Shown here piece after piece: positions 16,776 to 63,222 of a stretch of DNA of 64,000 nt (position 1 is the stretch's first letter; each line of letters opens with the position of its first letter). Location of the stretch: the IMG/VR virus record IMGVR_UViG_3300032242_002041, positions 1 through 64,000 of that record. One strand, 5' to 3'. The notes beneath the pieces were generated by a model. The model searched no databases. It had not been told where the DNA came from and saw only the letters and a list, made by a program, of their open reading frames with translations. A program made the translations under genes and the position numbers.

Positions 16776-18191
16776 ATCGCTCAATATTTTTACGACGAGC
16801 AGCTACGTCGATTCCTATTACAGTTTGCTAGAATATTTTCAAACTTTGACGTTGAATTTGGCACCAACGAAGCTGGCCAAGGTCCGGGCAGTACCGTAGA
16901 TACTCTAGTGCGTGTACCAGTACGCTACGGAGATGCCAGCCGGCAAGCGCAGACCATATTGCAAAACAATTCAGCCAACGACATGCCGGCAACACCCTTG
17001 ATGACATTTTATATTACAGATTTAAAATATGATCGGCCTAGAATGCAGGAACCGTATTATGTACAAAACATGTCGGTTCGACAACGAACCTATGATCCCA
17101 ACACGGACACCTATGAAACCACGCAAGGCAATGCATTTACTATAGAACGTGCCATGCCTGTACCTTATGAAATGACCATAAACTTGGACATTTGGACCAG
17201 CAACACCAATCAAAAAATGCAGTTGTTGGAACAAATTTTAACCTTATTCAATCCTAGCTTAGAAATTCAAAGCACTGACAACTACATTGACTGGACCAGT
17301 TTGACTGTGTTGTATCTCAAAGATGTGCGTTGGTCAAGTAGAACTGTTCCTGTTGGCACCGATAACCCAATTGATATTGCCACCTTATCATTTACCCTGC
17401 CCATGTGGATTACTCCGCCGGCCAAGGTCAAGAAGCTTGGCGTTATTGAGCGTATTATTACCAGTGTGTACGATGCGCAAGGCGACCTAATCAACTCATT
17501 GACCAACAGTGATTTATTGTTGGGTACTAGACAACGATTTACACCCTTTGGATATCAAGTGCTACTAGTCAATAACAAATTGCAGGCACTACGTCACCAA
17601 CAAGTCATTGATGAACCCAATGCAACGTTGACCGAGGCCAATAGTCCACCTAGTAACTTGTTGTGGCATAGTGTAATTGGTATGTACGGCGTGCTTCGTC
17701 CTGGAATCAGTTATATTACACTAGAACAGCCAGATGGAACCGATGTGTCTGGTACCGTGGCTTATGATCCCACCGACGATAGATTTTTGTTGTTTACTGT
17801 AAACACCAGTACTGTGCCGGCCAACACCTTGCCGCCAATAACGGCTGTGATAGATCCTCTGATCAGTGGGCCCGGTTATGGGTTGCCAGCGGCTGCTCCG
17901 GGACAACGATACCTGCTTACACAGGATACCGGCTCTTGGTCTAATCCAGACACCACCAATCCTGTGGCCTGGGAAGGGACGTTTGGACAACCGCTAGTAG
18001 CTCGTGCCAATGATATTATTGAATATGATGGCACCTATTGGCAAATTGTGTTTGATCGCACTAGTAGTCTAAATAATACACAGTATGTTACAAATCTTAC
18101 CTCAGAGTTACAGTATCGTTGGACTGGCACAACCTGGGTCAAGAGTTATCAAGGTATCTATCCGGGGGGCCAATGGACGCTGGTACTGTAA
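16776..18191 (+). CDS. Tail sheath terminator/stabiliser (gp15-like); probable non-canonical ATC start at 16776
   Basis: The frame is open from 16752 and encodes QYFYDEQLRRFLLQFARIFSNF, then VPVRYG, MPVPY and QLLEQILTLFNP. Confidence 0.85.
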   Translation: MAQYFYDEQLRRFLLQFARIFSNFDVEFGTNEAGQGPGSTVDTLVRVPVRYGDASRQAQTILQNNSANDMPATPLMTFYITDLKYDRPRMQEPYYVQNMSVRQRTYDPNTDTYETTQGNAFTIERAMPVPYEMTINLDIWTSNTNQKMQLLEQILTLFNPSLEIQSTDNYIDWTSLTVLYLKDVRWSSRTVPVGTDNPIDIATLSFTLPMWITPPAKVKKLGVIERIITSVYDAQGDLINSLTNSDLLLGTRQRFTPFGYQVLLVNNKLQALRHQQVIDEPNATLTEANSPPSNLLWHSVIGMYGVLRPGISYITLEQPDGTDVSGTVAYDPTDDRFLLFTVNTSTVPANTLPPITAVIDPLISGPGYGLPAAAPGQRYLLTQDTGSWSNPDTTNPVAWEGTFGQPLVARANDIIEYDGTYWQIVFDRTSSLNNTQYVTNLTSELQYRWTGTTWVKSYQGIYPGGQWTLVL

Positions 18192-18604
18192 CGGCTGTGG
18201 GAGTTTGGTTTTACACTGTTAATACTCATAGATATCTATATCTTATGAGGAACGATCCTAAACATCCCGGCTCTTGGGGCTTGCCCGGTGGACGTGTAGA
18301 GTCGGGCGAAACCTTACTAGAAGCCATGACCCGTGAATGTCGTGAAGAATTAGGGTTTGTGCCTGACTATTTGCGTATGATTCCTTTGGAAAAGTTTACC
18401 ACTAGTGACGCAGGCTTTGAATATCACACGTTTTTTTGTGTGGTAGACTCAGAATTCCAACCTACATTAAATCACGAACACTTAGGATATGCCTGGATCA
18501 ATTCGGGTATTTGGCCTCGTCCCATGCACCCAGGACTTTGGTCAACTGTAAACTTTGACGCAGTACAAAACAAAATACTAGTTATTGAATCTAGTCTACT
18601 GTGA
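18173..18604 (+). CDS. NUDIX hydrolase
   Basis: Nudix box GGRVESGETLLEAMTRECREELG. Confidence 0.92.
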   Translation: MDAGTVTAVGVWFYTVNTHRYLYLMRNDPKHPGSWGLPGGRVESGETLLEAMTRECREELGFVPDYLRMIPLEKFTTSDAGFEYHTFFCVVDSEFQPTLNHEHLGYAWINSGIWPRPMHPGLWSTVNFDAVQNKILVIESSLL

Positions 18605-44359: not shown

Positions 44360-44713
44360 TTAGTGCAAGTGCTTTACTACAGGAACTGCTGGTTCTTCTA
44401 TTTCTTCGGGTTTTGTAATTGCCATTTCGTTTTCGCAATCTTCACAGATTTTGTCGTCGGCTTTAGAGTGATCAAACACTTCGTCTAGCAAGTTTTCGGT
44501 GCTCCAACCTGAGCTGGATAATACATGAATACAATCAATAAACAAGCTAAACACCGCGGCTGTATAATCAAACTTTTCAGTACGGCCTTCTTTGCTCCAA
44601 AGCAATGCCATAGCATCTTCTGCAGCTTCGTTGCACACGTCCATGTTGAACACGTAGGTTGAGCCGTCGGCTAGGGTTTCAACAATGTCTTCGTTCTTTT
44701 CTACTTTACTCAT
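44360..44713 (-). CDS. Hypothetical acidic protein with CxxC
   Basis: 117-aa ORF with an AGGAG RBS inside the 3' end of the upstream endonuclease gene. Confidence 0.6.
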   Translation of the reverse strand: MSKVEKNEDIVETLADGSTYVFNMDVCNEAAEDAMALLWSKEGRTEKFDYTAAVFSLFIDCIHVLSSSGWSTENLLDEVFDHSKADDKICEDCENEMAITKPEEIEEPAVPVVKHLH

Positions 44714-45566
44714 GTGTTTCTCCTTTTGGTTTAATGCGTGGTTTTAATTTAGGGTTGTATCGTTTTGATTCTGAATTCATATGACAGTTATCGCCGTGCC
44801 ATCGTTTGAACATACTGGTTGGCACAGTCCAAGTACAGCACAAACAAGTGGTTTCAGATTGTGACGGATGTGTTCCTTCTGCTAACCGCATCAGATTGCC
44901 TTCGCTGCCGAGAAAGTTGTGTGTACCATCTTCTACTCGTTTGGCATTTAATTCAGGGCCAAGGAAGTTATGGGTACCGTCTGCTACTAACTTAGCATTT
45001 AATTTTCCGCCGGCATTTGGACTTTTTCCATCTTGCCAATGATGTATGCCTGCTGCACTACGCCATATGCTCGGATTGTTGGTTAAGTTAATGTGCGTAC
45101 CATTGGCCATTGCTGTTTTGGCATTACGACCGTCTTTGTTTGGGTGATTATTTAAAAATACTTGTTTAGCGTCAGGGTTACGATTCATCCAATGATTATC
45201 GCCAGCAAATTTTTCTCTATGTTTTTCAGGATCTTTATTAAACCAATGATTATCTCCTGATAACTTTGCCGCTACTTCGGGATCCTTCATTGGATTATTT
45301 TCAGAATCAAACCCTATTGGATCTTTGGTACGATTCATACAATTTGGTTTACCAAAATGCTCTGCTAAGTATTTGCCCTCAAGCGCCTTAACTGCTTCAA
45401 TTGAATCTGCGTATTCTAATATTTCGCGGGTCAGTGTCGACTTATCTTTTATTGATAGCGGCCATTTACCAGAGCCAATATACCCGTCGTTGATGTTGTT
45501 TGTACTGTGTCTTCCAACATAGTATTTTCCGTTTGTGTGTGTTGTTTTGTAGATAAAGTGTTTCAT
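44706..45566 (-). CDS. Free-standing GIY-YIG homing endonuclease with repeated GTH(N/P)F / GDNHW DNA-binding modules; start revised to 45566
   Basis: HFIYKTT...YYVGRHST...YIGSG and C-terminal CLCC...WHGDNC. TAAATA lies 5 nt upstream of the ATG. Confidence 0.85.
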   Translation of the reverse strand: MKHFIYKTTHTNGKYYVGRHSTNNINDGYIGSGKWPLSIKDKSTLTREILEYADSIEAVKALEGKYLAEHFGKPNCMNRTKDPIGFDSENNPMKDPEVAAKLSGDNHWFNKDPEKHREKFAGDNHWMNRNPDAKQVFLNNHPNKDGRNAKTAMANGTHINLTNNPSIWRSAAGIHHWQDGKSPNAGGKLNAKLVADGTHNFLGPELNAKRVEDGTHNFLGSEGNLMRLAEGTHPSQSETTCLCCTWTVPTSMFKRWHGDNCHMNSESKRYNPKLKPRIKPKGETHE

Positions 45567-45630
45567 AGTATTATTTAGCATAGTCTGTCGCATTACTAAA
45601 ATATTAACATCTTTAGAATTAAAAGTCAAC

Positions 45631-45654
45631 AAAAAAGGCACTCGAAAGTGCCTT
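45631..45654 (-). terminator. Major capsid gene terminator with UUCG loop
   Basis: AAGGCACT-TTCG-AGTGCCTT-TTTT on the minus strand. Confidence 0.88.
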
Positions 45655-49886: not shown

Positions 49887-51722
49887 TTATACTCCGGGTA
49901 CGCCGCCGGCAGGAGCTGTTGGAACAGCAGTTCCAGGAGCTGTAGTAGGAGCTCCGGGCATACCGCCTTCTGCACCCAGCATGCCGCCTGTGTCGGCGCC
50001 AGCTAGTTCTTCCCCAGTTTGAATATCACTTTCAAGTCCTGCAGGTGTAACGCCCACTGCACGTAGGTCCTGTCCTTGCGTAGTTTCTAATTCTGGTTCG
50101 TCGCGTTCTTCCATCCAAAGTGTTTCGTTTTCTACAATTTCTTCTTCGGTCAAGCCTAGGTAACGTTTCATCAGGAAGCGTTTGCTCATGTATGGCAGGG
50201 CTTCCACTTGTGAAAACGCTTGGATACGAGTAGTATCCAATTCACTCTGACGGTAACTTGCAAAGTTCTGTGGTTCGCAGAAGCTGATATTAAAGATCCC
50301 AGCGTCAATGTTAAAGCCTCTCCAACGCAAGAACATCTTGAATTCGTCGTCCAATTTCTGCATGATCAGCCGCTGTAGACGCATGCAATACTGGTTAAAA
50401 CGGTATTCTTGAATCAGTGCTGTGCCCACACGACCGTCACTCATGGCACGATCACTGTCGTCTGGACCGGTGGGCAAGTAGCTACTTGGCACACGTAGAC
50501 CACGTGCCATTTTGTTATTAAAGTACTTTAAATCATCAATTTCGCCAAGATTGCTACCGCCGGCCAGGGTAGTAACATCAGACCCTTTGCTGTCTGCACT
50601 CACCGGAAAGAAGTAGTCTTCGTTAATACTCAGTGGATTATAACTTGAATCCATCATATTTGCGCCACCGCCGGTGTTGGTAGGAATACGACGCTGATGC
50701 ATTTCATTCTTTACACGCTCAACAAACTGCATGGCCATATGGCTAGGCATATTGCCTACGTCAATTTTAAAGATTCTGCGCTCTGGAGCACGTTGTACAC
50801 GATAGATTAGGACAGCATCTTCCAGCAGTTCTTTTTGCTTGTAGACTTTAAAAATGTTTTCTAGTATACTCTGTCCAAAAGGCCAGAAAAAGTCAAGGCC
50901 TTCGTTGAGGCTTAGGTGCACCACGTGACGTGCATCTAAACAAGTTTCATTCATGGCCTGTGTAAAGCGACTGTTACCTGCTCCGCCCACTCCGCCGGCA
51001 CCACCACCGCCGCCTGCTCCGTTGGGTGCTGTATAGTTGGTTTGTCCCATTCCTCCAGTAGCACGACTTACATAGTAGTCGCTGGTAGTTTTTTGTGCCA
51101 CACTCATGTTTTGAAAGTTGGGATTAATATCGCGGATAACATACTGCTCAGGACGCTTGCCTTCGCTTTCGTTAACAATAACACGGGCCACTTTGACCAT
51201 GTCTACCCACATCATTTCAAATGTTTCTGGGTCACGTACAAATACTTGATCGCCATACTTGATTGTGTTGCGGAACAATTTGAATATGCGTTGATCTAAC
51301 TTGTTTAACTTGGTCCATTGCTGTAGTTGTTTTTTAACAATGTCTACTTCGTGATCTGTGGGTTTGTCAGTAAAATTAATATCAAACGGTGTACCGTTGT
51401 CTTGGTTGACTTGTGTTGAAAATTCAGCAATAATATCTAAACAGGCATTAACTTCGGAGTCCATGTCCATGTTTTCGTACTGATTATACCGCTCGATACG
51501 GTTAGGGTGCCCTGAATATACTTCAGGCAAACGGCTAGCATAGTTACGAAAGGCAAAATCGTTTGGTGTGCCGCCGGCAGCATAGCCTTGTCCGGTCTGG
51601 CGGGGATAGCCGTCTAACCCGAACTGGTTTTGTCCTGAAATTGGACTAAGTTGCCCGCCGGTACTAGCAACTTTAAAATATTTTTTCCAACCGCGTTTAC
51701 GGTTATTATCGTTATCTGCCAT
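49887..51722 (-). CDS. Portal protein (gp20-like)
   Basis: LLEDAVLIYRVQRAPERRIFKIDVGNMP, EDYFFP, LGEIDDLKYF and LRVPSS motifs. Confidence 0.97.
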   Translation of the reverse strand: MADNDNNRKRGWKKYFKVASTGGQLSPISGQNQFGLDGYPRQTGQGYAAGGTPNDFAFRNYASRLPEVYSGHPNRIERYNQYENMDMDSEVNACLDIIAEFSTQVNQDNGTPFDINFTDKPTDHEVDIVKKQLQQWTKLNKLDQRIFKLFRNTIKYGDQVFVRDPETFEMMWVDMVKVARVIVNESEGKRPEQYVIRDINPNFQNMSVAQKTTSDYYVSRATGGMGQTNYTAPNGAGGGGGAGGVGGAGNSRFTQAMNETCLDARHVVHLSLNEGLDFFWPFGQSILENIFKVYKQKELLEDAVLIYRVQRAPERRIFKIDVGNMPSHMAMQFVERVKNEMHQRRIPTNTGGGANMMDSSYNPLSINEDYFFPVSADSKGSDVTTLAGGSNLGEIDDLKYFNNKMARGLRVPSSYLPTGPDDSDRAMSDGRVGTALIQEYRFNQYCMRLQRLIMQKLDDEFKMFLRWRGFNIDAGIFNISFCEPQNFASYRQSELDTTRIQAFSQVEALPYMSKRFLMKRYLGLTEEEIVENETLWMEERDEPELETTQGQDLRAVGVTPAGLESDIQTGEELAGADTGGMLGAEGGMPGAPTTAPGTAVPTAPAGGVPGV

Positions 51723-51772: not shown

Positions 51773-53971
51773 TTATCTAGCAGAGTTTTGCGCTTGCTTT
51801 TTGCTGTTATCATCAATGTTGGCTAATCGACGATCCATAGATTGTAGCGCACTGTTTAACGTACCTAAAATTTCTTCACTGTGATCTGTGCGACTAGCTT
51901 CTTGATTGGCTTTTGCTACTTCTTTTTCAGGTAAAGTGGCATTAGGTTTTATTGCGGCTAGCTTGTTGTCAAAACTGTTCTTGGGGCCTGCCAATAATTC
52001 TGATCGAGCATCCTGTGCGGTTGTTTTGGCTTGACCAGCCAATAATTCTGATCGAGCATCCTGTGCGGTTGTTTTGGCTTGACCAGCCAACAACTCTGCA
52101 TTGGCCATTCTGGCACCTGTTTCGGTGCCAGCCGACCGTTCGTATAATCTATCTACTAGTTGAGCAGCCTGGGCCGCTGTTTTAGCTTGACGTAATTGAT
52201 CGCCGGCTCGTTTTTCAGTATTTTTAAGTTCATAGTCAACAAACTTTAGTTGCTCTTCGAGCGTAGAGTCTTTTAATGTTTTGCCCATGACTCGTTCAAA
52301 ATTGGCCTGGCGATCTGGGTGCCACTGTGCAACTCCCTTGGCTTTGCCACCATCGCCCACAGCATTGATGTTTAAATTCTTTCCAGATTCTTGTTGTAGG
52401 TTCCCTACAATTCCAGCGGCTTGTTCTTTGGTCCAGCCGGCACTTTGAAAGAATTTCATTGCGGTGTCGGCATTTTGACTTGAGCCAGCCCCTTGCCCGC
52501 CAAACGTTTTAGCAGGGCCGCCACCTATGCCCTGGGTGGATGCTATATTTCCTGGTGCTACTCCAGCAATTTTGTTGGTTACTTTGGATAATGCTTCCAA
52601 TGATGTAGTAGCTGGGTTTACACCCATTGTAACAAAACTTTGTAGAGAATCTCTACTCTTCATCTGGTTAATACGCAGTTCAACCTGTGCTTTGGTGTTA
52701 GGATCTAGGCCTTTTTGTTGTAGCTCTTGTTGAGCCTTGGCCAAATCCTCTTGTTGTTTCATACTAACGTCGGTATTACGAGATAAGATTCGACTACGTG
52801 TTTCAGCATCGTAGACTGCGTCGTCCATTGCTCCGTTAAACTTGTACATGCTGGCCATGCCAGATTCGTCAAATTGTTTCATGCCGGCTGTTAGTTTATC
52901 CATTCCAGCGGCTGCTTTAAAGTTTTTATCTTGTGTGTACAGTGCAAATTCACTCATTCCCATGGTCATCATCTTGCCACTTGCACTAACATCTCCGCCA
53001 ATACTTCTCCAATAATCTTTTTGTAGTGCTGGAGAAGTTTTTAGCATATCAGACATTTTGATATATTCGTCGGCTAAATCTAGTGATGCTTGGTCTCCCT
53101 TTTTCCTTAGCTCGTAAATGGTTTGATTAAACGCATTTTCAGCCATGGCTTGATTTCTATTTTCTTGAAGGGCCTCTGCACTTTCGCCTGTGAGCTTGCT
53201 CATTAAATCTAACTGCTTGATATACTCAGCACTTCTGGCAGCTAGATTTTGTTGTATGTTTGTTGATGTTACTCCAGACATTTGCTGTTGTTTAACAAAC
53301 ATAGCTATACCACGATTTATATCATCGGGTGTTTTGCCCAACATCTGTAATGATTTACCTACATCACTACGTTGTATCTGTGAGGCTGCATCGGCAAATG
53401 CTCTGGTTCCGCTAGCAGCAGTGCCACCAAAAGATGCCAGTGCCGCACTGTTCTCTTTGATTATTGCAGTCATTTGGTCTAGTTGTTCAAAACCATAACC
53501 TAACTTCTGCATGTTGGCAGTAATTTCTGTCATGCCACCAGCAGCGGCTGCACCTGATTTACTTAAATCTTGATAGGCTTTAAATACCGCATCACTCTGC
53601 TTGTTTACTGTTTTAAGTCCTTCGGCAAATACGCCCACAACTTTGCTGGCTGCAAACAAGCCTGCTTTAAGCAAAGCAGATCCGGGAATAATAAGAAGAA
53701 GAGCTTCTAGTCCACCAGCAAGCGAATCTATGGCGCCGTTCATTGCCGACATGCCTTGCTCGCCCTTATACATGGCCTTGGTAAAGTCTACAACTCCTTT
53801 GCCCATTTTTGACTGGGCGTCGGCCATTGCTTTAGAGTAGCCTTTGAGACCTTTTTCGGCATCTTTCATGGCATTAGCCATTTCCTGAGTTATAGGAGTG
53901 CCAGATTTGATTGCGTTATTATACGCTTCAAATATGCCTTGGATTTCTTCCGGGGTGTATTGATCAGCCAT
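51773..53971 (-). CDS. Tape-measure/hub protein with C-terminal phage tail lysozyme domain; start revised to 53971
   Basis: Long Ala-rich helical region, then FFQSAGWTKEQAAGIVGNLQQES...GVAQW...LEEQLKFVDYEL...YER. Confidence 0.8.
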   Translation of the reverse strand: MADQYTPEEIQGIFEAYNNAIKSGTPITQEMANAMKDAEKGLKGYSKAMADAQSKMGKGVVDFTKAMYKGEQGMSAMNGAIDSLAGGLEALLLIIPGSALLKAGLFAASKVVGVFAEGLKTVNKQSDAVFKAYQDLSKSGAAAAGGMTEITANMQKLGYGFEQLDQMTAIIKENSAALASFGGTAASGTRAFADAASQIQRSDVGKSLQMLGKTPDDINRGIAMFVKQQQMSGVTSTNIQQNLAARSAEYIKQLDLMSKLTGESAEALQENRNQAMAENAFNQTIYELRKKGDQASLDLADEYIKMSDMLKTSPALQKDYWRSIGGDVSASGKMMTMGMSEFALYTQDKNFKAAAGMDKLTAGMKQFDESGMASMYKFNGAMDDAVYDAETRSRILSRNTDVSMKQQEDLAKAQQELQQKGLDPNTKAQVELRINQMKSRDSLQSFVTMGVNPATTSLEALSKVTNKIAGVAPGNIASTQGIGGGPAKTFGGQGAGSSQNADTAMKFFQSAGWTKEQAAGIVGNLQQESGKNLNINAVGDGGKAKGVAQWHPDRQANFERVMGKTLKDSTLEEQLKFVDYELKNTEKRAGDQLRQAKTAAQAAQLVDRLYERSAGTETGARMANAELLAGQAKTTAQDARSELLAGQAKTTAQDARSELLAGPKNSFDNKLAAIKPNATLPEKEVAKANQEASRTDHSEEILGTLNSALQSMDRRLANIDDNSKKQAQNSAR
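51990..52090. repeat. Exact 48-bp tandem duplication (GQAKTTAQDARSELLA x2)
   Basis: 51990-52037 is identical to 52038-52085. Confidence 0.9.
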
Positions 53972-53997
53972 AATTATATTTACCGAGGTAAGAAAAC

Positions 53998-54837
53998 ATG
54001 AATCTAAACAATCCACTTAAACAGTATTTTAGACAACCGGCAATCTACGTCCGACTGCCCAGTCAGGGTCAAAGTTACCCTGCAGGTGCTCTAACCATGC
54101 CACCAACAGGCGAATTACCAGTGTATCCAATGACTGCCATTGACGAAATTACCTATCGTACACCAGATGCGTTATACAATGGACAAGCCACAGTCAACGT
54201 AATACAAAGCTGTATTCCTGATATCAAAGATGCTTGGGCAGTTCCTTCTACCGACACCGATACCCTGTTAATAGCTATACGCATAGCCACCTACGGGCAT
54301 GATATGGATTTTGGCACTGTTTGTCCATCCTGTAGAAAAGAGTCAGAACAAACATTGGATTTGCGTAATGTCTTGGATTCTATGCGTCCAGCTGATTATA
54401 GTAAAACTGTACAGGCTGGCGATATGGAAATATTTTTCAAACCATTGAATTACAAGAATATCAATGACAACAACGCAATACAGTATGAAAATCAAAAACT
54501 CTTACAGATGTTGCCCGATACTGCTGTACCCGACGCTGAAAAAATGACAGCCTTGACTGCTGCTTTAAAAAGAATTACCGATATTACAGTAAGTGCAATT
54601 GGACAAAGTATTTCTGCAATAAAAACTCCACAGGCTTTGGTCAACGAGCCTGCTTTCATTGAAGAATTCTTAACAAATTGTGATCGAAAACTGTTTAATC
54701 AAATTCGTGATTTTATTATCAATCTCAAGGTTAATTCAGAAATGCAACCACTTAAGATAACATGCCCTGATTGTAATCACACATACGAACAAAGTATTAC
54801 ATTGGACATGTCCAGTTTTTTCGGGTCCGCCTCTTAG
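53998..54837 (+). CDS. Baseplate hub / tail assembly chaperone (gp26/gp51-like)
   Basis: LPSQG..YP, PMTAIDE, DTLLIAIRIATYG, two CxxC motifs and a C-terminal SFF. Confidence 0.8.
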   Translation: MNLNNPLKQYFRQPAIYVRLPSQGQSYPAGALTMPPTGELPVYPMTAIDEITYRTPDALYNGQATVNVIQSCIPDIKDAWAVPSTDTDTLLIAIRIATYGHDMDFGTVCPSCRKESEQTLDLRNVLDSMRPADYSKTVQAGDMEIFFKPLNYKNINDNNAIQYENQKLLQMLPDTAVPDAEKMTALTAALKRITDITVSAIGQSISAIKTPQALVNEPAFIEEFLTNCDRKLFNQIRDFIINLKVNSEMQPLKITCPDCNHTYEQSITLDMSSFFGSAS

Positions 54838-54863
54838 TCTCGACATCTGACCAGATTAGCAAG

Positions 54864-55052
54864 ATGGTTGATCAGATGGAAAAAGACACAGTTAATATCA
54901 GACGAGAGGCGTTGCAAATGGCCTGGTATATGCGTGGAGGATTGTCTTACGATCAAGCTCTGCAGCTCAGCGTCAGTGAGCGTACATTAATCAGCGAATT
55001 AATTAAAGAAAACTTAGACACCACCAAAAAATCAGGATTACCTTTTTTCTAA
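54864..55052 (+). CDS. Small hub-assembly ORF, probably also expressed as a -1 frameshift extension of 53998..54837
   Basis: WYMRGGLSY...LS..ER motif. The frame is open back to the T TTT TTC heptamer at 54816. Confidence 0.7.
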   Translation: MVDQMEKDTVNIRREALQMAWYMRGGLSYDQALQLSVSERTLISELIKENLDTTKKSGLPFF

Positions 55053-55558
55053 TGTTAGATCTAGCAACTGTAAAACAAGCGATAGAGCAGTGGATAGTAG
55101 ACTTCGTTGAAGTTCCACATCCAGCACTTGGTGGCTGGGCTCCTTGTCCGTATGCTCGTAAGGCTCGCCTTGAACAAGCCTATGAAGTAAGGTTGGGCAC
55201 AGACCCCTATGTTGACTTGCTGGAAATTTCTAAAACTGGCCTAAACGGTAAAAGTGTCATTGTCGTTGCTTATGATCCTGCACACTGGGAATACCGATAT
55301 TTTAGTGAAAGCCTAAAAGCTGCAAACATTGTGCATTTACTTGACCGTGACCTCCTGGCCTTGGAGGATCATCCTGGAGACCCAGAAATTGTCAACGGCG
55401 TTTCAATGAATCAAGGAACCTATGCCTTGGCCTTGGTCCAGAGTCTCAGTGACCTGAATGAAAAAGCCAAGGCCATGGCTCGCAAAGGATTTTATGCAAC
55501 GTGGCCAGAAGAATATTTACAAGCATTGTTTGAAAACCGCAAGGATCCTAGACTGTGA
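55052..55558 (+). CDS. DUF1415-like protein with PCPYA motif
   Basis: W...FVE.P...GGWAPCPYA and EDHP motifs. Confidence 0.5.
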   Translation: MLDLATVKQAIEQWIVDFVEVPHPALGGWAPCPYARKARLEQAYEVRLGTDPYVDLLEISKTGLNGKSVIVVAYDPAHWEYRYFSESLKAANIVHLLDRDLLALEDHPGDPEIVNGVSMNQGTYALALVQSLSDLNEKAKAMARKGFYATWPEEYLQALFENRKDPRL

Positions 55559-56742: not shown

Positions 56743-57171
56743 TTAAATTTTGTTTTTTATGTGACTTCCATGTATACGGCACACAATTTGTCCGTTATAA
56801 TAGTCGTCTGATTCTAATACTCTATGATTAAATTGTTCTCTGGCTTCAATATAACTACATTCTGCTTTTGATTTACAATAAAATAATATTTCTCTTGTAA
56901 AGTTGTCGGCGCCCTGCGCTAGAATATCTTGGTTGAGTTGATCGTTGCTTCCATAGTATAGTTGCCAGTCTGAGTCTATTTTGCTTTTTATTTTCTTACG
57001 TTTTTTGTTGCCGTTTTTTAATTTTACTACCTTGTATGAGGTTTTACTAAATTTTGCTAATTTTTTTCCAATATATTTTCTGCCAGTTATGTTATTTGTA
57101 ATCAAATAAACAAAGCCGACACAGTCTTCGGGTAGTGTTTCAATTTGTGTGTTTTCGTAAAGCCATACCAT
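56743..57171 (-). CDS. Minimal GIY-YIG nuclease
   Basis: GFVYLITN...KYIGKK, YYGS, FTREIL and YIEAREQF...YYNG motifs, plus a Lys-rich insertion. Confidence 0.85.
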   Translation of the reverse strand: MVWLYENTQIETLPEDCVGFVYLITNNITGRKYIGKKLAKFSKTSYKVVKLKNGNKKRKKIKSKIDSDWQLYYGSNDQLNQDILAQGADNFTREILFYCKSKAECSYIEAREQFNHRVLESDDYYNGQIVCRIHGSHIKNKI

Positions 57172-57189
57172 GGACTTATAGTTATCATA

Positions 57190-58200
57190 TCACCACTCGG
57201 TTGCATATTTTTCATCCACTTTCGTATCAGAACACTTGGTTTGACATTCTTGCCAACGAAATGTTTTTAATTCTGCTGTCCAAAACGGATCAGCTATTAC
57301 ATCTAATAAGGTTCTAGTATGTAGATCAAACTGTTCAGCCAGAGTTTGCCACTCACTGTTGTGCCCGTATCGGTTGGCTACCCAGCAACAAGGAAACAAT
57401 CTACCACGAGCGTCTATGTACAAGCCCTTGTTACCAATTTCACACAAAGGTTTAACGCCGTTGATCTCAGTCGCCGACTTGTACAATTGTATATTTTTTT
57501 CGTTTACACGATTGTTAATGCCACGTGAGCTTAACAGTATAACATCTCTTTCAAATCTATGCGACCCGCTGACAAACTTACGACTAGGTTCCAACGGATC
57601 ATCAATGCCGTAACTGGGATAAACACTGCCAAATTTGGTAGAACGTGTAAGTTGAAATGCATCCATGCCCAGTTTCGTTGCTAAAGATTTCATATAGTCA
57701 ACGTGATCTTCGTTGAACTTAAAGGCTATAGCGGCCCACACCAATCGACACTTGCTTACGGCTCTTAGAGTTTCAATTCCCAGCACGATTGATACAAAAT
57801 CACTGTTTACACGATATAGATTATTACTGGCGTTATCGTAACCGTCTACGCTAAAATGCACTGTGTCTTGATCTGTTAACACAGAGCCTAGCCCTTGCCA
57901 CCATTCAGGCTTCTTGTGTGAACCATTGGTAACAATAACTATCTGCACAGGTTTAATGCGTTTGATATACTCAATTACAGGAATAAGATCGTGTGCATAT
58001 ATAGGGTCGCCATCATCGCCACAGAATGTAATTTTCTCAACATTTTTTAATATAAAATCTTCTGTAAAGTTACGTTTAAAGAACGCTAAATCTAATTCAG
58101 TATTAACTAACCCATTGGGAACTTCCTGCCGGGCGCACCGAGGGCACCGTAAGGTACACTTACTGCTGATCTCAATATGGAAGTGCCAAGTTGCTAACAT
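57190..58200 (-). CDS. Radical SAM enzyme with C-terminal SPASM/twitch domain
   Basis: CTLRCPRC, FCGDDGDP, TNGS, FSVDG and C-terminal C...PCCW...CQTKC. Confidence 0.92.
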   Translation of the reverse strand: MLATWHFHIEISSKCTLRCPRCARQEVPNGLVNTELDLAFFKRNFTEDFILKNVEKITFCGDDGDPIYAHDLIPVIEYIKRIKPVQIVIVTNGSHKKPEWWQGLGSVLTDQDTVHFSVDGYDNASNNLYRVNSDFVSIVLGIETLRAVSKCRLVWAAIAFKFNEDHVDYMKSLATKLGMDAFQLTRSTKFGSVYPSYGIDDPLEPSRKFVSGSHRFERDVILLSSRGINNRVNEKNIQLYKSATEINGVKPLCEIGNKGLYIDARGRLFPCCWVANRYGHNSEWQTLAEQFDLHTRTLLDVIADPFWTAELKTFRWQECQTKCSDTKVDEKYATEW

Positions 58201-59488: not shown

Positions 59489-59973
59489 TGTGCAACCCTT
59501 AGATGAAATCGTGTCAATGGATGTATCCAATTAAACTTGTTGCCAAAATCAAGTCCACATGGTTGGTATTGTTCAACTGTTGCGTTTATGTTTTTGGTAA
59601 TAAATTGCTCAATAGCAGTGTCATAGTCAGCAGACAACGTGGAATCATAGCAGTTGGCCTGTGCCACATACTTGTTCAGTGACAGATAAATTAAGGATCC
59701 TGGAAGCATTTGATTTTTTATTATACCATTGATGTTGGAAACAAGATCGTCAAAATTAAATTCTTGTAACTGTATATAGATACAAAAATCTACCGGTTCT
59801 GAATCTACAAATTCAACAAAGTCAGCAAAGTAATCAATCGCGCCTATTGCTAACGCTTGTTTATAATTGCCACGATTGATTATATCTATCAAGTCTTGAT
59901 CCTGCTGTATACGGCACTGGCCTTCAAATAAACTCAATTGACCATCGCGGTCTGGTCTAGGATATGTCGACAT
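59485..59973 (-). CDS. Hypothetical protein
   Basis: 162-aa ORF overlapping the end of gp46; contains MLPGSLIYLS. Confidence 0.55.
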   Translation of the reverse strand: MSTYPRPDRDGQLSLFEGQCRIQQDQDLIDIINRGNYKQALAIGAIDYFADFVEFVDSEPVDFCIYIQLQEFNFDDLVSNINGIIKNQMLPGSLIYLSLNKYVAQANCYDSTLSADYDTAIEQFITKNINATVEQYQPCGLDFGNKFNWIHPLTRFHLRVAQ

Positions 59974-61720
59974 CGGTGTTATAACTTGTAAATCCGTTTT
60001 CTTTGACCACTTTGAGAATATTTTCTACTCGTCCAGCAAGTTCATCTCTATGACTTACTAGCCAAATTGACTTGTGTCGTTCGCGGCTCATCTGTTTTAA
60101 CAAGGCCAACGCACTCTCTACACCAGCAGTATCGAGTCCGTTGTCAATCATTTCGTCTATAAACAGGAGATTAATTGGCTGGTATAAACTTTCAAATACA
60201 TCACGGAATGCCCACGACATACTCAGAATTAGTCGATTACGTTCACCGCGGCTTAGGTTATCAAAGTCCAACTCACGACCTAGCTCTTCAATACCAACGG
60301 TTAAGTCGTTTTGGAATACCACAGTATGCGGCAAGCCCACGCGATCCAAGTAGTGTGTTAGTCTAGCATTTAGATAGCTAAGATTTTGTTCAATAATCTT
60401 CTTACGGATGAAACTGTCTTTGCTTGTGAGCAGTTTGAGTAGGAACTCTTGATGTTCTTGCAAGCGAGTAAGTTCATTAAGTGTGTCATATGAGACCTCC
60501 TGTAAGGCTTGTTGTTGCATTTCTTCAATCTGTTCTGCATAAGGATCTGTTTCCACTTGCTTTGTGGCAATCTGTTGCTCCAAGCTAGTTAATGTAGCTT
60601 GATGTTGAATAGCATCACTCTCTTTGTCATAGAACATCTTGGGCGGCTTACCTAACGTGCCCAAGGCCGTGTGGGCAGTCTCCAGCTCTGATAGGAGGGT
60701 GCTGTAAGTTGTGCCGCTCTCTCGAGCCGTTGCCAGATCACTCTGTTTCGCTTCCATAACCTGTTGGTGCTTACTATCGTGGAAGGGCTGACCACACGTA
60801 TGACATTCATGGTTAGCGAGCGTTTCAATTTCCTTAGATAGTTTGGCGACCAACTTGTCCTCCCGGCCGATGTCCAGTTTGACTCGTGCGATCTGACTCG
60901 ATAGTTCGTTGATATCCTTTCGCTTTTGATCCCACTCCTTGTGATCTTTATGCGCTTGGATCTCCACTGCAATGTCAATTGCCTGTAACGATTGTAAGGC
61001 TTTCTCAAGTTCTTTGATATCTTCGCCATGTTTAGTAGCCCATAATCCTTGTCTACGTTTAAGACTGTCTATTTGTTCTTCGATGCGTTTATTGGCTTCC
61101 TGTATTGCACGAATACGAAATTCTTCTTGCGTAATTCCGTCTTTGGTTTGTTTGTTGAGCTCTTTAATTCGGTCAGCACGTTCACTTAGCATGGTAATGC
61201 CAAGCAATTGCTCAATTATGGTACGCTGATCGTTGGCTTTAAGACTTAAAAATGGTTCAGTATAAGTGTTTAACGCCATGATATGTTTGAACATATCGTG
61301 ACTAAGTCCCAAGGTAGCTTCAATTGACTCTTGCGTTTCTCTTGAATCACCTTGTGCTTCGTCAGTAATGACTTGTTCTTGATTGTTTACATAGAATTTT
61401 AAAATATTGGGTTTACGACCACGCTCAATTTTATAAGTTTGATTTCCAGCTACAAAATCTAAACTGACCAACATGCCCTTGCCGTTGGTCTTATTAACCA
61501 GATTGTCTTTGCGAATATTGCTTAGTGCCTGGCCGTATAATGCATAACTCAGGGCATTTATAATAGTAGTCTTACCAGTACCATTGCGACTACCATCACC
61601 ACCTAGGTCCAAATTTTCTCCTAGTACAAGAGTCAGGTCGGTGCGATCAAAATCAATAGCCTGTGTGGTATTGCCTACACTCATAAAGTTTTTTACAGTA
61701 AGATTTTTAATTTGTATCAT
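59957..61720 (-). CDS. Recombination endonuclease ATPase subunit (gp46/SbcC/Rad50-like)
   Basis: KNFMSVGN, NGTGKTT, CHTCGQ zinc hook, LSRGE signature, FIDE and VSH motifs. Confidence 0.96.
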   Translation of the reverse strand: MIQIKNLTVKNFMSVGNTTQAIDFDRTDLTLVLGENLDLGGDGSRNGTGKTTIINALSYALYGQALSNIRKDNLVNKTNGKGMLVSLDFVAGNQTYKIERGRKPNILKFYVNNQEQVITDEAQGDSRETQESIEATLGLSHDMFKHIMALNTYTEPFLSLKANDQRTIIEQLLGITMLSERADRIKELNKQTKDGITQEEFRIRAIQEANKRIEEQIDSLKRRQGLWATKHGEDIKELEKALQSLQAIDIAVEIQAHKDHKEWDQKRKDINELSSQIARVKLDIGREDKLVAKLSKEIETLANHECHTCGQPFHDSKHQQVMEAKQSDLATARESGTTYSTLLSELETAHTALGTLGKPPKMFYDKESDAIQHQATLTSLEQQIATKQVETDPYAEQIEEMQQQALQEVSYDTLNELTRLQEHQEFLLKLLTSKDSFIRKKIIEQNLSYLNARLTHYLDRVGLPHTVVFQNDLTVGIEELGRELDFDNLSRGERNRLILSMSWAFRDVFESLYQPINLLFIDEMIDNGLDTAGVESALALLKQMSRERHKSIWLVSHRDELAGRVENILKVVKENGFTSYNTDVDIS

Positions 61721-63222
61721 AGATTCTTATTATACACGTATCCCATGGCTTTTGCAATCTCAAAATGGTTTTCTGAAAAGTTTTCATTTCTAATTTGATC
61801 AAACCATCTAACTCGATTATTAAACTTAGCACCATCGCTGTCTGGTAGCGTTTTTATAATTTCCAATACCTTTTGTATTTCGTTCCAGGGATGGTCTTTG
61901 AATTTGTTAAACATTAATTCCTTAGCGTCTTTGGTTAAATTATTCAATTCAACACCAGGGCCACGCACATGACTAACAAATAACGGAAACCCGTGTTGTT
62001 GTGCCCAGTTGTATACTTGATCAATGTAATACACGTTCATAATACTGATGGTAGGCATAATACTGATAGAAAGATTTGGTAAATTTAATTCTTTGATTCT
62101 GAGAATATTTGCCTCAACATCTTTCCAACTGCCGCCTCGTTGTAACTCAAACTGTTTTTCAACAGCATCAATACTAAAATGTATATCAACCAATTTAAAA
62201 TCTGGCCAGTAAGGTAATAACTGTTCGGGCCATATAGACCCGTTACTGTTATAGTGCAATCTGATATGCGTGGAGTGCCCTTGATCAACAGCTAGCTCTA
62301 GCACTTTTTTAAATTTTTTTATTAAAAATGGTTCGCCGCCAAACATGTCAATGTTTTGAATTCTTGGAAGCAACTCAACCATTTGATTAATAAAACTATC
62401 ACTTTCACTCCAGTTGTCTTGTAAAACCAGCGGGATTCCTTGATACTTGTGTTCCTCTAATGCAAACAGTGAGCTGCTCTCGCCGTTGCATACACGACAT
62501 TTAAAATTGCAAGTGTTATTAAACTTAAGATCAATGGTTGATATTTCAGGATCATCCAAAAACTTAGTTAAAAAATCTTTTTTTGTACGTTTTATATTAT
62601 GCATACGTATTGAAGTTAAGTTTTTATCTTCAACTTTCCAACAGGAGCTACATTCTGCTGGTTTCCTGCCAGCTAAGAATTCTGCCCGCAATTGTGTTGC
62701 AACCTCACTGTGAAATGCCTGTTCCAGCGTTGTAGTTTTAATATTGCCCAAACTTAAATTTTTGATCATACAACAAGGTGTAATATCACCAGTTGAACGG
62801 ATTTCTAAATTGGTCCAGGGTATTGAGCAAATAGTATCGGGCAGCATATTTGAATCAACCACTTTGTGGGTAGGACCAAGAGCAACTTCTTGAAATCCAA
62901 CAGGAATTGGATCTGTTGAAAACTGCCGGCACGATGATGCCACTAGATCCTTTAATTCAGCAGGACCGCAGATTAATATAAACCAGTTGCTAATATCAAT
63001 AAAGTTAATTGTTTCATACAGATTTTGCAAGAACTGCTCAGATAGGTGTTGCGAAGTGTAAAATACAATACGATCGTCGGCATTGTAACTCTCTTGATAT
63101 ACACTGTCTAGTGCTTTAAACAATCCATTAGGAGTGGCTGATAGCTTTCCTAAATCGTGTATCAGCTTGACATTAAATTTTTCTTTCAGTTGACTTTCGA
63201 GATCATCCGGCGAAATAATCAT
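61717..63222 (-). CDS. Radical SAM enzyme with upstream SPASM/twitch-like domain
   Basis: CSIPW...PCC...CSSCW followed by CNFKCRVC, FGGEPF and FSID. Confidence 0.9.
   Translation of the reverse strand: MIISPDDLESQLKEKFNVKLIHDLGKLSATPNGLFKALDSVYQESYNADDRIVFYTSQHLSEQFLQNLYETINFIDISNWFILICGPAELKDLVASSCRQFSTDPIPVGFQEVALGPTHKVVDSNMLPDTICSIPWTNLEIRSTGDITPCCMIKNLSLGNIKTTTLEQAFHSEVATQLRAEFLAGRKPAECSSCWKVEDKNLTSIRMHNIKRTKKDFLTKFLDDPEISTIDLKFNNTCNFKCRVCNGESSSLFALEEHKYQGIPLVLQDNWSESDSFINQMVELLPRIQNIDMFGGEPFLIKKFKKVLELAVDQGHSTHIRLHYNSNGSIWPEQLLPYWPDFKLVDIHFSIDAVEKQFELQRGGSWKDVEANILRIKELNLPNLSISIMPTISIMNVYYIDQVYNWAQQHGFPLFVSHVRGPGVELNNLTKDAKELMFNKFKDHPWNEIQKVLEIIKTLPDSDGAKFNNRVRWFDQIRNENFSENHFEIAKAMGYVYNKNL
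61729..61757 (-). promoter_or_regulatory. Sigma70-like promoter TTGCAA-17-TATAAT for gp46, embedded in the radical SAM 3' end
   Basis: The -10 box lies 8 nt before the gp46 ATG. Confidence 0.55.

Follow-up and report, generated by a model that had tools for sequence, protein, structure and literature searches.

A T4-type hub chaperone gene of a jumbo phage that very probably yields short and long products through a programmed -1 frameshift

Assembly of the phage T4 baseplate hub requires two chaperones, gp26 and gp51, which both belong to the Pfam family PF12322 (T4_baseplate) and are encoded by two separate, divergently transcribed paralogous genes. Leiman et al. 2010 (PMC3004832) list both as hub assembly chaperones, call gp51 essential, of unknown function and absent from the particle, and note that the presence of gp26 in the hub is disputed. 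In cyanophages and phiW-14-like phages a small ORF annotated as 'gp51' or 'baseplate hub assembly catalyst' (phrog_634) follows the gp26 gene. In other long-tailed phages, short/long chaperone pairs are produced from one gene: lambda gpG/gpGT and P2 gpE/gpE+E' are made by -1 frameshifting near the 3' end of the first ORF, in P2 on a T-run (Xu, Hendrix and Duda 2004), and such a pair is also known from Mu. While short/long chaperone pairs made in this way are a hallmark of long-tailed phage assembly, T4-type phages have been treated as lacking one. Full-text literature searches, in a collection that lacks most subscription journals, found no description of frameshifting in gp26/gp51-type genes, and none of the annotated records that we examined shows a joined CDS. 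Here we examine a gp26-type gene in a 64,000-nt stretch of DNA (the window), part of a 228-kb IMG/VR record from freshwater or lake samples, for which a -1 frameshift had been proposed from the sequence alone.

Anatomy of the locus

To establish whether the sequence is as described in the original prediction, we first re-examined the reading frames of the region, and found that the observation was correct in its details. The upstream ORF ends TCC AGT TTT TTC GGG TCC GCC TCT TAG, placing T_TTT_TTC in X_XXY_YYZ phase four codons before the stop. After a -1 slip the next codon would be CGG at 54822, and the frame remains open for 76 codons to TAA 55050-55052, so that the predicted long product comprises 275 + 76 = 351 aa. 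The features of the locus are as follows.

49887-51722 (-): T4-type portal protein (gp20; PF07230, 2.8e-103).
51773-53971 (-): tape-measure-like protein with a tail lysozyme domain (phrog_9570 at 7.8e-36; Phage_lysozyme2, PF18013, at 1.1e-30), the divergent neighbour; the ORF is open from a GTG at 54016, but the first Met is at ORF residue 16 and the likely start is the ATG at 53971.
53998-54837 (+): gp26-type baseplate hub assembly chaperone gene, with a 279-aa 0-frame product containing two CxxC pairs and a C-terminal Phe-Phe.
54816-54822 (+): slippery heptamer T_TTT_TTC; the Phe-Phe codons are preceded by a codon ending in T.
54822-54863 (+): bridge of 14 -1-frame codons (RVRLLVSTSDQISK), which could be translated only after a frameshift.
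54822-55052 (+): full -1-frame extension of 76 codons plus TAA.
54835-54837 (+): 0-frame stop codon TAG that ends the short product.
54864-55052 (+): 62-aa ORF from a mechanical listing, which is the C-terminal 62 codons of the extension and probably not an independent gene.

The 0-frame product matches PF12322 at 56.7 bits against a cut-off of 24.5 (E = 3.5e-15) and phrog_150 at 2.2e-16, and is the only PF12322 copy in the 228-kb record. It aligns with T4 gp26, with the terminal FF invariant, and C109, C112, C256, C259, F274 and F275 are invariant or nearly so in three alignments. The AlphaFold2 model of this domain has a pLDDT of 86, and its matches in BFVD are T4-like baseplate hub assembly proteins from many myoviruses. 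The extension is predicted to be helical, with two long and two short helices (pLDDT 85). Foldseek searches of the PDB and AFDB Swiss-Prot, as well as profile searches of PDB sequences, gave no meaningful match for either domain. The surrounding genes fit a T4-related virus: apart from the portal, the window encodes a major head protein, a prohead protease, a tail tube and a tail sheath / sheath stabilizer-like protein. The closest named relatives are Rak2-like jumbo myoviruses, while a DNA-level search of the phage collection found nothing. The synteny portal <- tape measure <- | -> chaperone gene is also seen in Phosso.

The 14 bridging codons hold no ATG, GTG or TTG, and ATG 54864 is the first start after the upstream stop in that frame. 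The original prediction also noted that the 62-aa ORF has no recognisable RBS. This is true but is weak evidence, because many genes in this window lack one. The heptamer alone could likewise be chance. Of 94 long frames in the window, seven have an in-phase heptamer in their last 12 codons, and one other, G_GGG_GGC at 18164, also has a long -1 ORF, which however is an unrelated NUDIX hydrolase with its own ATG at 18173. We dismissed this site, as well as a heptamer at 55043-55049 in the end of the extension itself, as chance. What lifts the site at 54816 above chance is its conservation in relatives.

Conservation of the heptamer and of the -1 frame

The prediction had named conservation of the T-run, of the -1 register and of a coding signal upstream of ATG 54864 as its own criteria, with bridge stops, a variable register or synonymous changes that break the run counting against it, and we therefore examined each of these in homologues. 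Six isolate genomes (Atu_ph07, Phosso, RaK2, 121Q, PA5oct and GAP32, 23-33% protein identity to the window) all carry T_TTT_TTC in phase, 1-6 codons before the stop, and 80 IMG/VR loci at 44-80% identity do the same; together these give 74 distinct window-type sequences, 74 of which have the heptamer. The codon before Phe-Phe always ends in T, although it encodes D, S, N, H or R, while elsewhere in these genes Phe is TTT 379 : TTC 216. The 0-frame tail after FF is 1-6 codons long and not conserved. By contrast, the -1 ORF is 70-77 codons long in this group and conserved from its first residue (R-x-R-L-L ... W-Y-M-R-G-G ... E-T-T-K-K-S-G-L-P-F-F), with R1, L4 and L5 invariant in the alignment of the extension.

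The signal is much wider than this clade. Cyanophages S-WAM1 and S-SSM6a and Aeromonas phage Aeh1 have T_TTT_TTC one codon before the stop and a 60-68 codon -1 ORF, and among 80 IMG/VR cyanophage-type loci 61 of 61 distinct sequences have the heptamer. The codon after the junction Arg in these loci is ATA, TTA, GTA or CTA, none of which is a start. Across both types and Aeh1 the codon preceding FF always ends in T, whether it encodes D, S, N, H, R or A. The T-run, its phase and the -1 register are thus invariant in 135 distinct homologues from two deeply diverged clades, in which the -1 ORF is 62-77 codons long; the bridging codons carry a -1-frame coding signal and a near-invariant R-x-R-L-L peptide, and no homologue has a stop in the bridge. 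In T4, FF is invariant in the protein but is encoded TTC TTT, gene 25 follows directly, and there is no extension.

To determine where the coding signal switches frame, we computed per-column entropy over 65 distinct window-type sequences. Variability peaks at the third codon position of the 0 frame upstream of the heptamer (1.43) and, from the first 30 nt downstream, at the third position of the -1 frame (1.35-1.62), while the heptamer and the following G have zero entropy. As a matched control for a conserved dipeptide under no such constraint, we examined the Pro-Phe-Phe-stop that ends the extension itself. In 62 distinct loci of the same set this FF is TTC-TTC 32, TTC-TTT 16, TTT-TTC 7 and TTT-TTT 6 times, the preceding codon ends in A, T, G or C, and T_TTT_TTC is formed only once, in the window. 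Conserved FF dipeptides in these genomes therefore vary freely at synonymous sites, except at the proposed slip site.

These data bear on the alternative that the locus comprises two ordinary genes, with the 62-aa ORF translated from its own ATG at 54864, possibly coupled to termination of the upstream gene, and the T-run being merely the codons of a conserved Phe-Phe. An ATG does exist at 54864, the FF dipeptide is itself functionally conserved, even in T4, which has no extension, and in 12 of 74 relatives as well as in phage Cygsa01 an ATG lies at or next to the junction, so independent initiation is possible in some lineages. However, the first ATG of the -1 frame falls at 11 different codon positions among the window-type relatives (codon 1, 2, 6, 11, 12, 14, 18, 30, 32, 36 or 127), the second codon is usually not a start, and the RaK2, PA5oct, S-WAM1 and Aeh1 records annotate nothing there. 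Since independent initiation explains neither the conserved start-less bridge, nor the variable ATG position, nor the covalently joined long forms described below, we consider it unlikely.

A second alternative, that the same long protein is made by transcriptional slippage, with RNA polymerase adding one U in the T6 run, gives exactly the same product, and sequence alone does not distinguish the two routes. We nevertheless consider it unlikely: productive slippage sites use runs of about 8-9 or more, whereas the run here is exactly six T in all 135 homologues, although FFF or a T-ending context would allow a longer one, and it always keeps ribosomal X_XXY_YYZ phase with C at position 7. A hairpin placed 6-7 nt downstream, as in the relatives described below, is moreover the classic ribosomal stimulator. 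A metatranscriptome contig of a relative crosses the junction without an indel, but contigs hide minority forms, and no RNA sequencing run was found to hold this phage. Finally, a homopolymer sequencing or assembly error splitting a single in-frame gene is all but excluded, because T6 followed by an early 0-frame stop is found in 135 independent assemblies, including isolate genomes, and because contigs of four samples, the source sample among them, show no indel at the run.

Contiguous long forms, gene copy number and RNA context

To probe what the extension is, we compared it with T4 gp51 and with the small 'gp51' ORFs. The cyanophage and Aeh1 extensions hit phrog_634. T4 gp51 (249 aa), a paralogue of gp26, hits PF12322 over residues 1-201 (E = 3.9e-52) and phrog_634 over residues 147-246; its residues 8-180 align with the Aeh1 0-frame protein, and its residues 200-248 align without gaps with the Aeh1 -1 extension, starting at the junction F-(K/R)-L (E = 3e-5). 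T4 gp51 is therefore a contiguous protein colinear with the predicted trans-frame product, and gp26 corresponds to the short form. For the window-type extension the relation to the gp51 tail is weaker. It has no phrog_634 hit, its alignment with single-sequence T4 gp51 by hhalign was not significant, and hhalign of the window-type against the gp51-type extension alignment gave only E = 0.0074, over the ...S-x-x-E-R...L-I segment. The position after FF and the register are the same, but these observations do not settle whether the two tails are homologous.

Contiguous long forms also exist for the window's own type. A profile of the window-type extension searched against 1.84 billion protein representatives found 459 matches, most of them small ORFs whose called starts fall at 18 or more different profile positions. 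Twenty of the best 150 matches are 319-351 aa proteins with the extension at the very C-terminus, and all eight that were tested carry PF12322. Their junction reads ...L-D-W-S-S-S-F-R-N-K-I-L..., compared to ...L-D-M-S-S-F-F | R-V-R-L-L... in the window. In three of three genomic contexts examined (metagenomic relatives L181, L182 and L183) the long gene is preceded by a tandem short PF12322 paralogue of 287-294 aa in the synteny of the window: portal <- 829-aa tape-measure-like protein <- | -> short -> long. The window protein is closer to the long paralogue (E = 3e-40) than to the short one (E = 3e-33). The existence of such long forms could be taken to favour an assembly error in the window, but they have different codons at the junction (TTC CGT, TTC AGA) as well as a separate short paralogue. 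The short paralogues of L181 and L182 still end in T_TTT_TTC although their -1 frame closes after one or two codons, and the T-run can therefore persist without an extension, either as a relic or for another reason.

We next assessed PF12322 copy number in eleven genomes. T4, KFS-EC and KARL-1 have two copies and no heptamer. Aeh1, S-WAM1, S-SSM6a, RaK2, PA5oct, Atu_ph07 and the window's record have one copy, with the heptamer and the -1 extension. Cygsa01 has one copy and no heptamer, with the extension as a separate ATG-initiated ORF.

A search for stimulatory RNA structures gave different results in different groups. In the subgroup that is sister to the window's (L042-L087) a two-part stem-loop starts 6-7 nt after the heptamer, the classic position of a ribosomal stimulator; it is 90.5% paired, with 13 cells changed on both sides, a level reached by 0/500 shuffles, while slid controls are 31-57% paired. 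Mean folding z-scores for the 62 nt after the heptamer are -2.24 in this subgroup and -2.91 in the cyanophage type. RNAalifold gave no consensus for the cyanophage set, where the hairpins are in different registers, so structure there is supported by per-sequence z-scores only. In the window's own subgroup RNAalifold found no conserved structure at all, the z-score is -0.22, and the window's own MFE hairpin is not conserved. A structure is not obligatory for low-level slips, and frameshift efficiency in this phage may therefore be low and unstimulated, or stimulated by something that we did not detect.

A proposed model and its relation to described systems

Taken together, these results strongly support the interpretation in the original prediction, that the two ORFs encode a short protein and a -1 frameshifted fusion. 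In this model most ribosomes stop at TAG 54835 and make the 279-aa protein, while a fraction slip back one base when the two Phe-tRNAs sit on UUU-UUC of U_UUU_UUC, re-pair on UUU-UUU and continue for 76 more codons, giving the 351-aa long form with a helical C-terminal domain. The short form would correspond to T4 gp26 and the long form to T4 gp51, so that one gene would supply a chaperone pair at a ratio fixed by slip efficiency. The sequence anatomy, its conservation, the frame switch of the coding signal and the existence of contiguous homologues of the fusion are shown by the analysis, whereas the ribosomal nature of the slip, its efficiency and the division of labour between the two forms are our inferences. 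The support is comparative, and there is no protein-level, ribosome-profiling or reporter evidence, but we hold with high confidence that the trans-frame product is made. A role in hub assembly is inferred from T4 and was not assayed; the only hint as to presence in the virion is that the PA5oct record marks the neighbouring tape-measure-like protein, but not this protein, as detected by ESI-MS/MS.

A broader reading, which we consider somewhat more likely than not, is that a -1 frameshift on U_UUU_UUC is the usual, and possibly ancestral, way in which T4-superfamily myoviruses make the gp26/gp51 pair, including Rak2-like jumbo phages, marine cyanophages and Aeh1-like phages. T4's two genes, and the tandem short/long pairs of some metagenomic relatives, would then be independent duplications that replaced the recoding event, T4 hub assembly would come under the 'short plus frameshift-extended chaperone' rule known from lambda, P2 and Mu, and the small cyanophage 'gp51' genes would have to be re-annotated as frameshift tails.

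While the mechanism is a standard -1 frameshift, what appears new is its presence in the T4-type hub chaperone family and the reading of gp26 and gp51, which remain essential and of unknown function, as the two isoforms of one chaperone. This suggests that a fixed short:long ratio matters for hub assembly, an idea for which genomes with one frameshifting gene and genomes with two separate genes offer natural comparisons. It would also correct the annotation of hundreds of jumbo-phage and cyanophage genomes, in which the extension is either missing or called as a truncated small ORF, and would add a deeply conserved bacterial-virus U_UUU_UUC site to the recoding catalogue.

The small 'gp51' ORFs of cyanophages and phiW-14-like phages occupy the same position and the same -1 register after a PF12322 gene and share the ...P-x-E-R... 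motif. They are annotated as free 57-63 aa proteins starting at an internal Met, but our data indicate that in cyanophages they are the tail of a frameshift product, since 61 of 61 have the heptamer and the codons before the Met are conserved. In Cygsa01, a true separate ORF is plausible.

The 'G/GT-type' designation of the original prediction holds only as a mechanistic analogy. As in lambda and P2, an in-phase heptamer sits near the 3' end of the first ORF, the extension has no start codon of its own, a short and a long isoform would share an N-terminal domain, and the gene lies next to the tape-measure gene and is inferred to have an assembly role rather than a virion role. However, no tail assembly chaperone family was among the Pfam or PHROGs hits, and with no PDB match the fold was not compared with known tail assembly chaperones. 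The upstream protein is about three times larger, and the gene is divergent from the tape-measure gene rather than upstream of it, between the tube and tape-measure genes. A complex prediction for the chaperone domain with tape-measure residues 1-510 returned no answer, which counts neither for nor against binding; binding to the tape measure or tube is not shown, and the T4 homologues act in hub assembly.

The prediction was right that this is not the textbook picture of T4. T4 itself lacks the slippery site and uses two genes where one gene with a -1 slip is inferred here, and the window-type tail has a ~17-residue insertion and only weak similarity to the gp51 tail. The N-terminal domain is nevertheless homologous, with the zinc-ribbon cysteines and the terminal Phe-Phe, the short and long forms differ by a C-terminal helical tail of about 50-76 residues, and the genes lie beside the hub or tape-measure genes.

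Heptamers within the window

We examined two other heptamers in the window:
18164-18170, G_GGG_GGC, six codons before the stop of the 427-aa tail sheath / sheath stabilizer-like ORF (16908-18191)
18173-18604, 144-codon -1 ORF behind that heptamer, a NUDIX hydrolase (phrog_1198)
55043-55049, second T_TTT_TTC, at the very end of the extension (CCT TTT TTC TAA), with the next ORF (55052-55558) in its -1 frame

The NUDIX hydrolase ORF has its own ATG at 18173, just after the G-run, and looks like an ordinary overlapping gene, with the G-run serving as a ribosome-binding site, rather than the product of a frameshift. In the case of the second T_TTT_TTC, only the window has this heptamer among 62 distinct relatives, indicating a chance arrangement, and we used this position as the synonymous-site control. 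In four metagenome or metatranscriptome runs, contigs of several different relatives pile up exactly on the ~60-nt stretch around the proposed slip heptamer (window 54794-54856), which is the most conserved DNA of the locus.

Neighbouring genes

The structural module and its surroundings contain the following additional features:
51773-54016 (-), tape-measure-like protein with a Phage_lysozyme2 domain at residues 515-641
44706-45641 (-) and 56743-57171 (-), homing-endonuclease-like ORFs (phrog_314 / phrog_7363 hits)
57190-58200 (-), 61717-63222 (-) and 59957-61720 (-), two radical-SAM-domain proteins flanking an SbcC-like nuclease subunit

The tape-measure-like ORF is open from a GTG that overlaps the start of the chaperone gene, but the first ATG (53971) is the more likely start. 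The homing-endonuclease-like ORFs lie between structural genes, one of them just downstream of the major head protein gene, and the second ORF listed (56743-57171) also hits phrog_447, which is annotated 'NAD synthetase'. The radical-SAM and SbcC-like genes form an unusual cluster beside the structural module.

Two-gene relatives and public annotations

In two of the relatives that carry separate short and long genes, the short PF12322 paralogues (locus L181, 820-1704, and locus L182, 411-1295) have lost the first CxxC pair. However, both still end in T_TTT_TTC, although the -1 frame closes after 1-2 codons, and this may be a relic of a frameshifting ancestor. In a two-gene relative, the T4-type portal gene, as listed for the contig of GCA_015689235.1, is 1015 aa and carries an intein (PF14890) inside the Portal_T4 domain; the DNA of this contig was not examined.

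Finally, we considered the public records of the cyanophages S-WAM1 and S-SSM6a, Aeromonas phage Aeh1, and the phages RaK2 and PA5oct. These records either annotate nothing after the gp26-type gene or call a truncated small ORF starting at an internal Met, the cyanophage 'gp51 / hub assembly catalyst'. If the frameshift is real, these annotations need a joined CDS.
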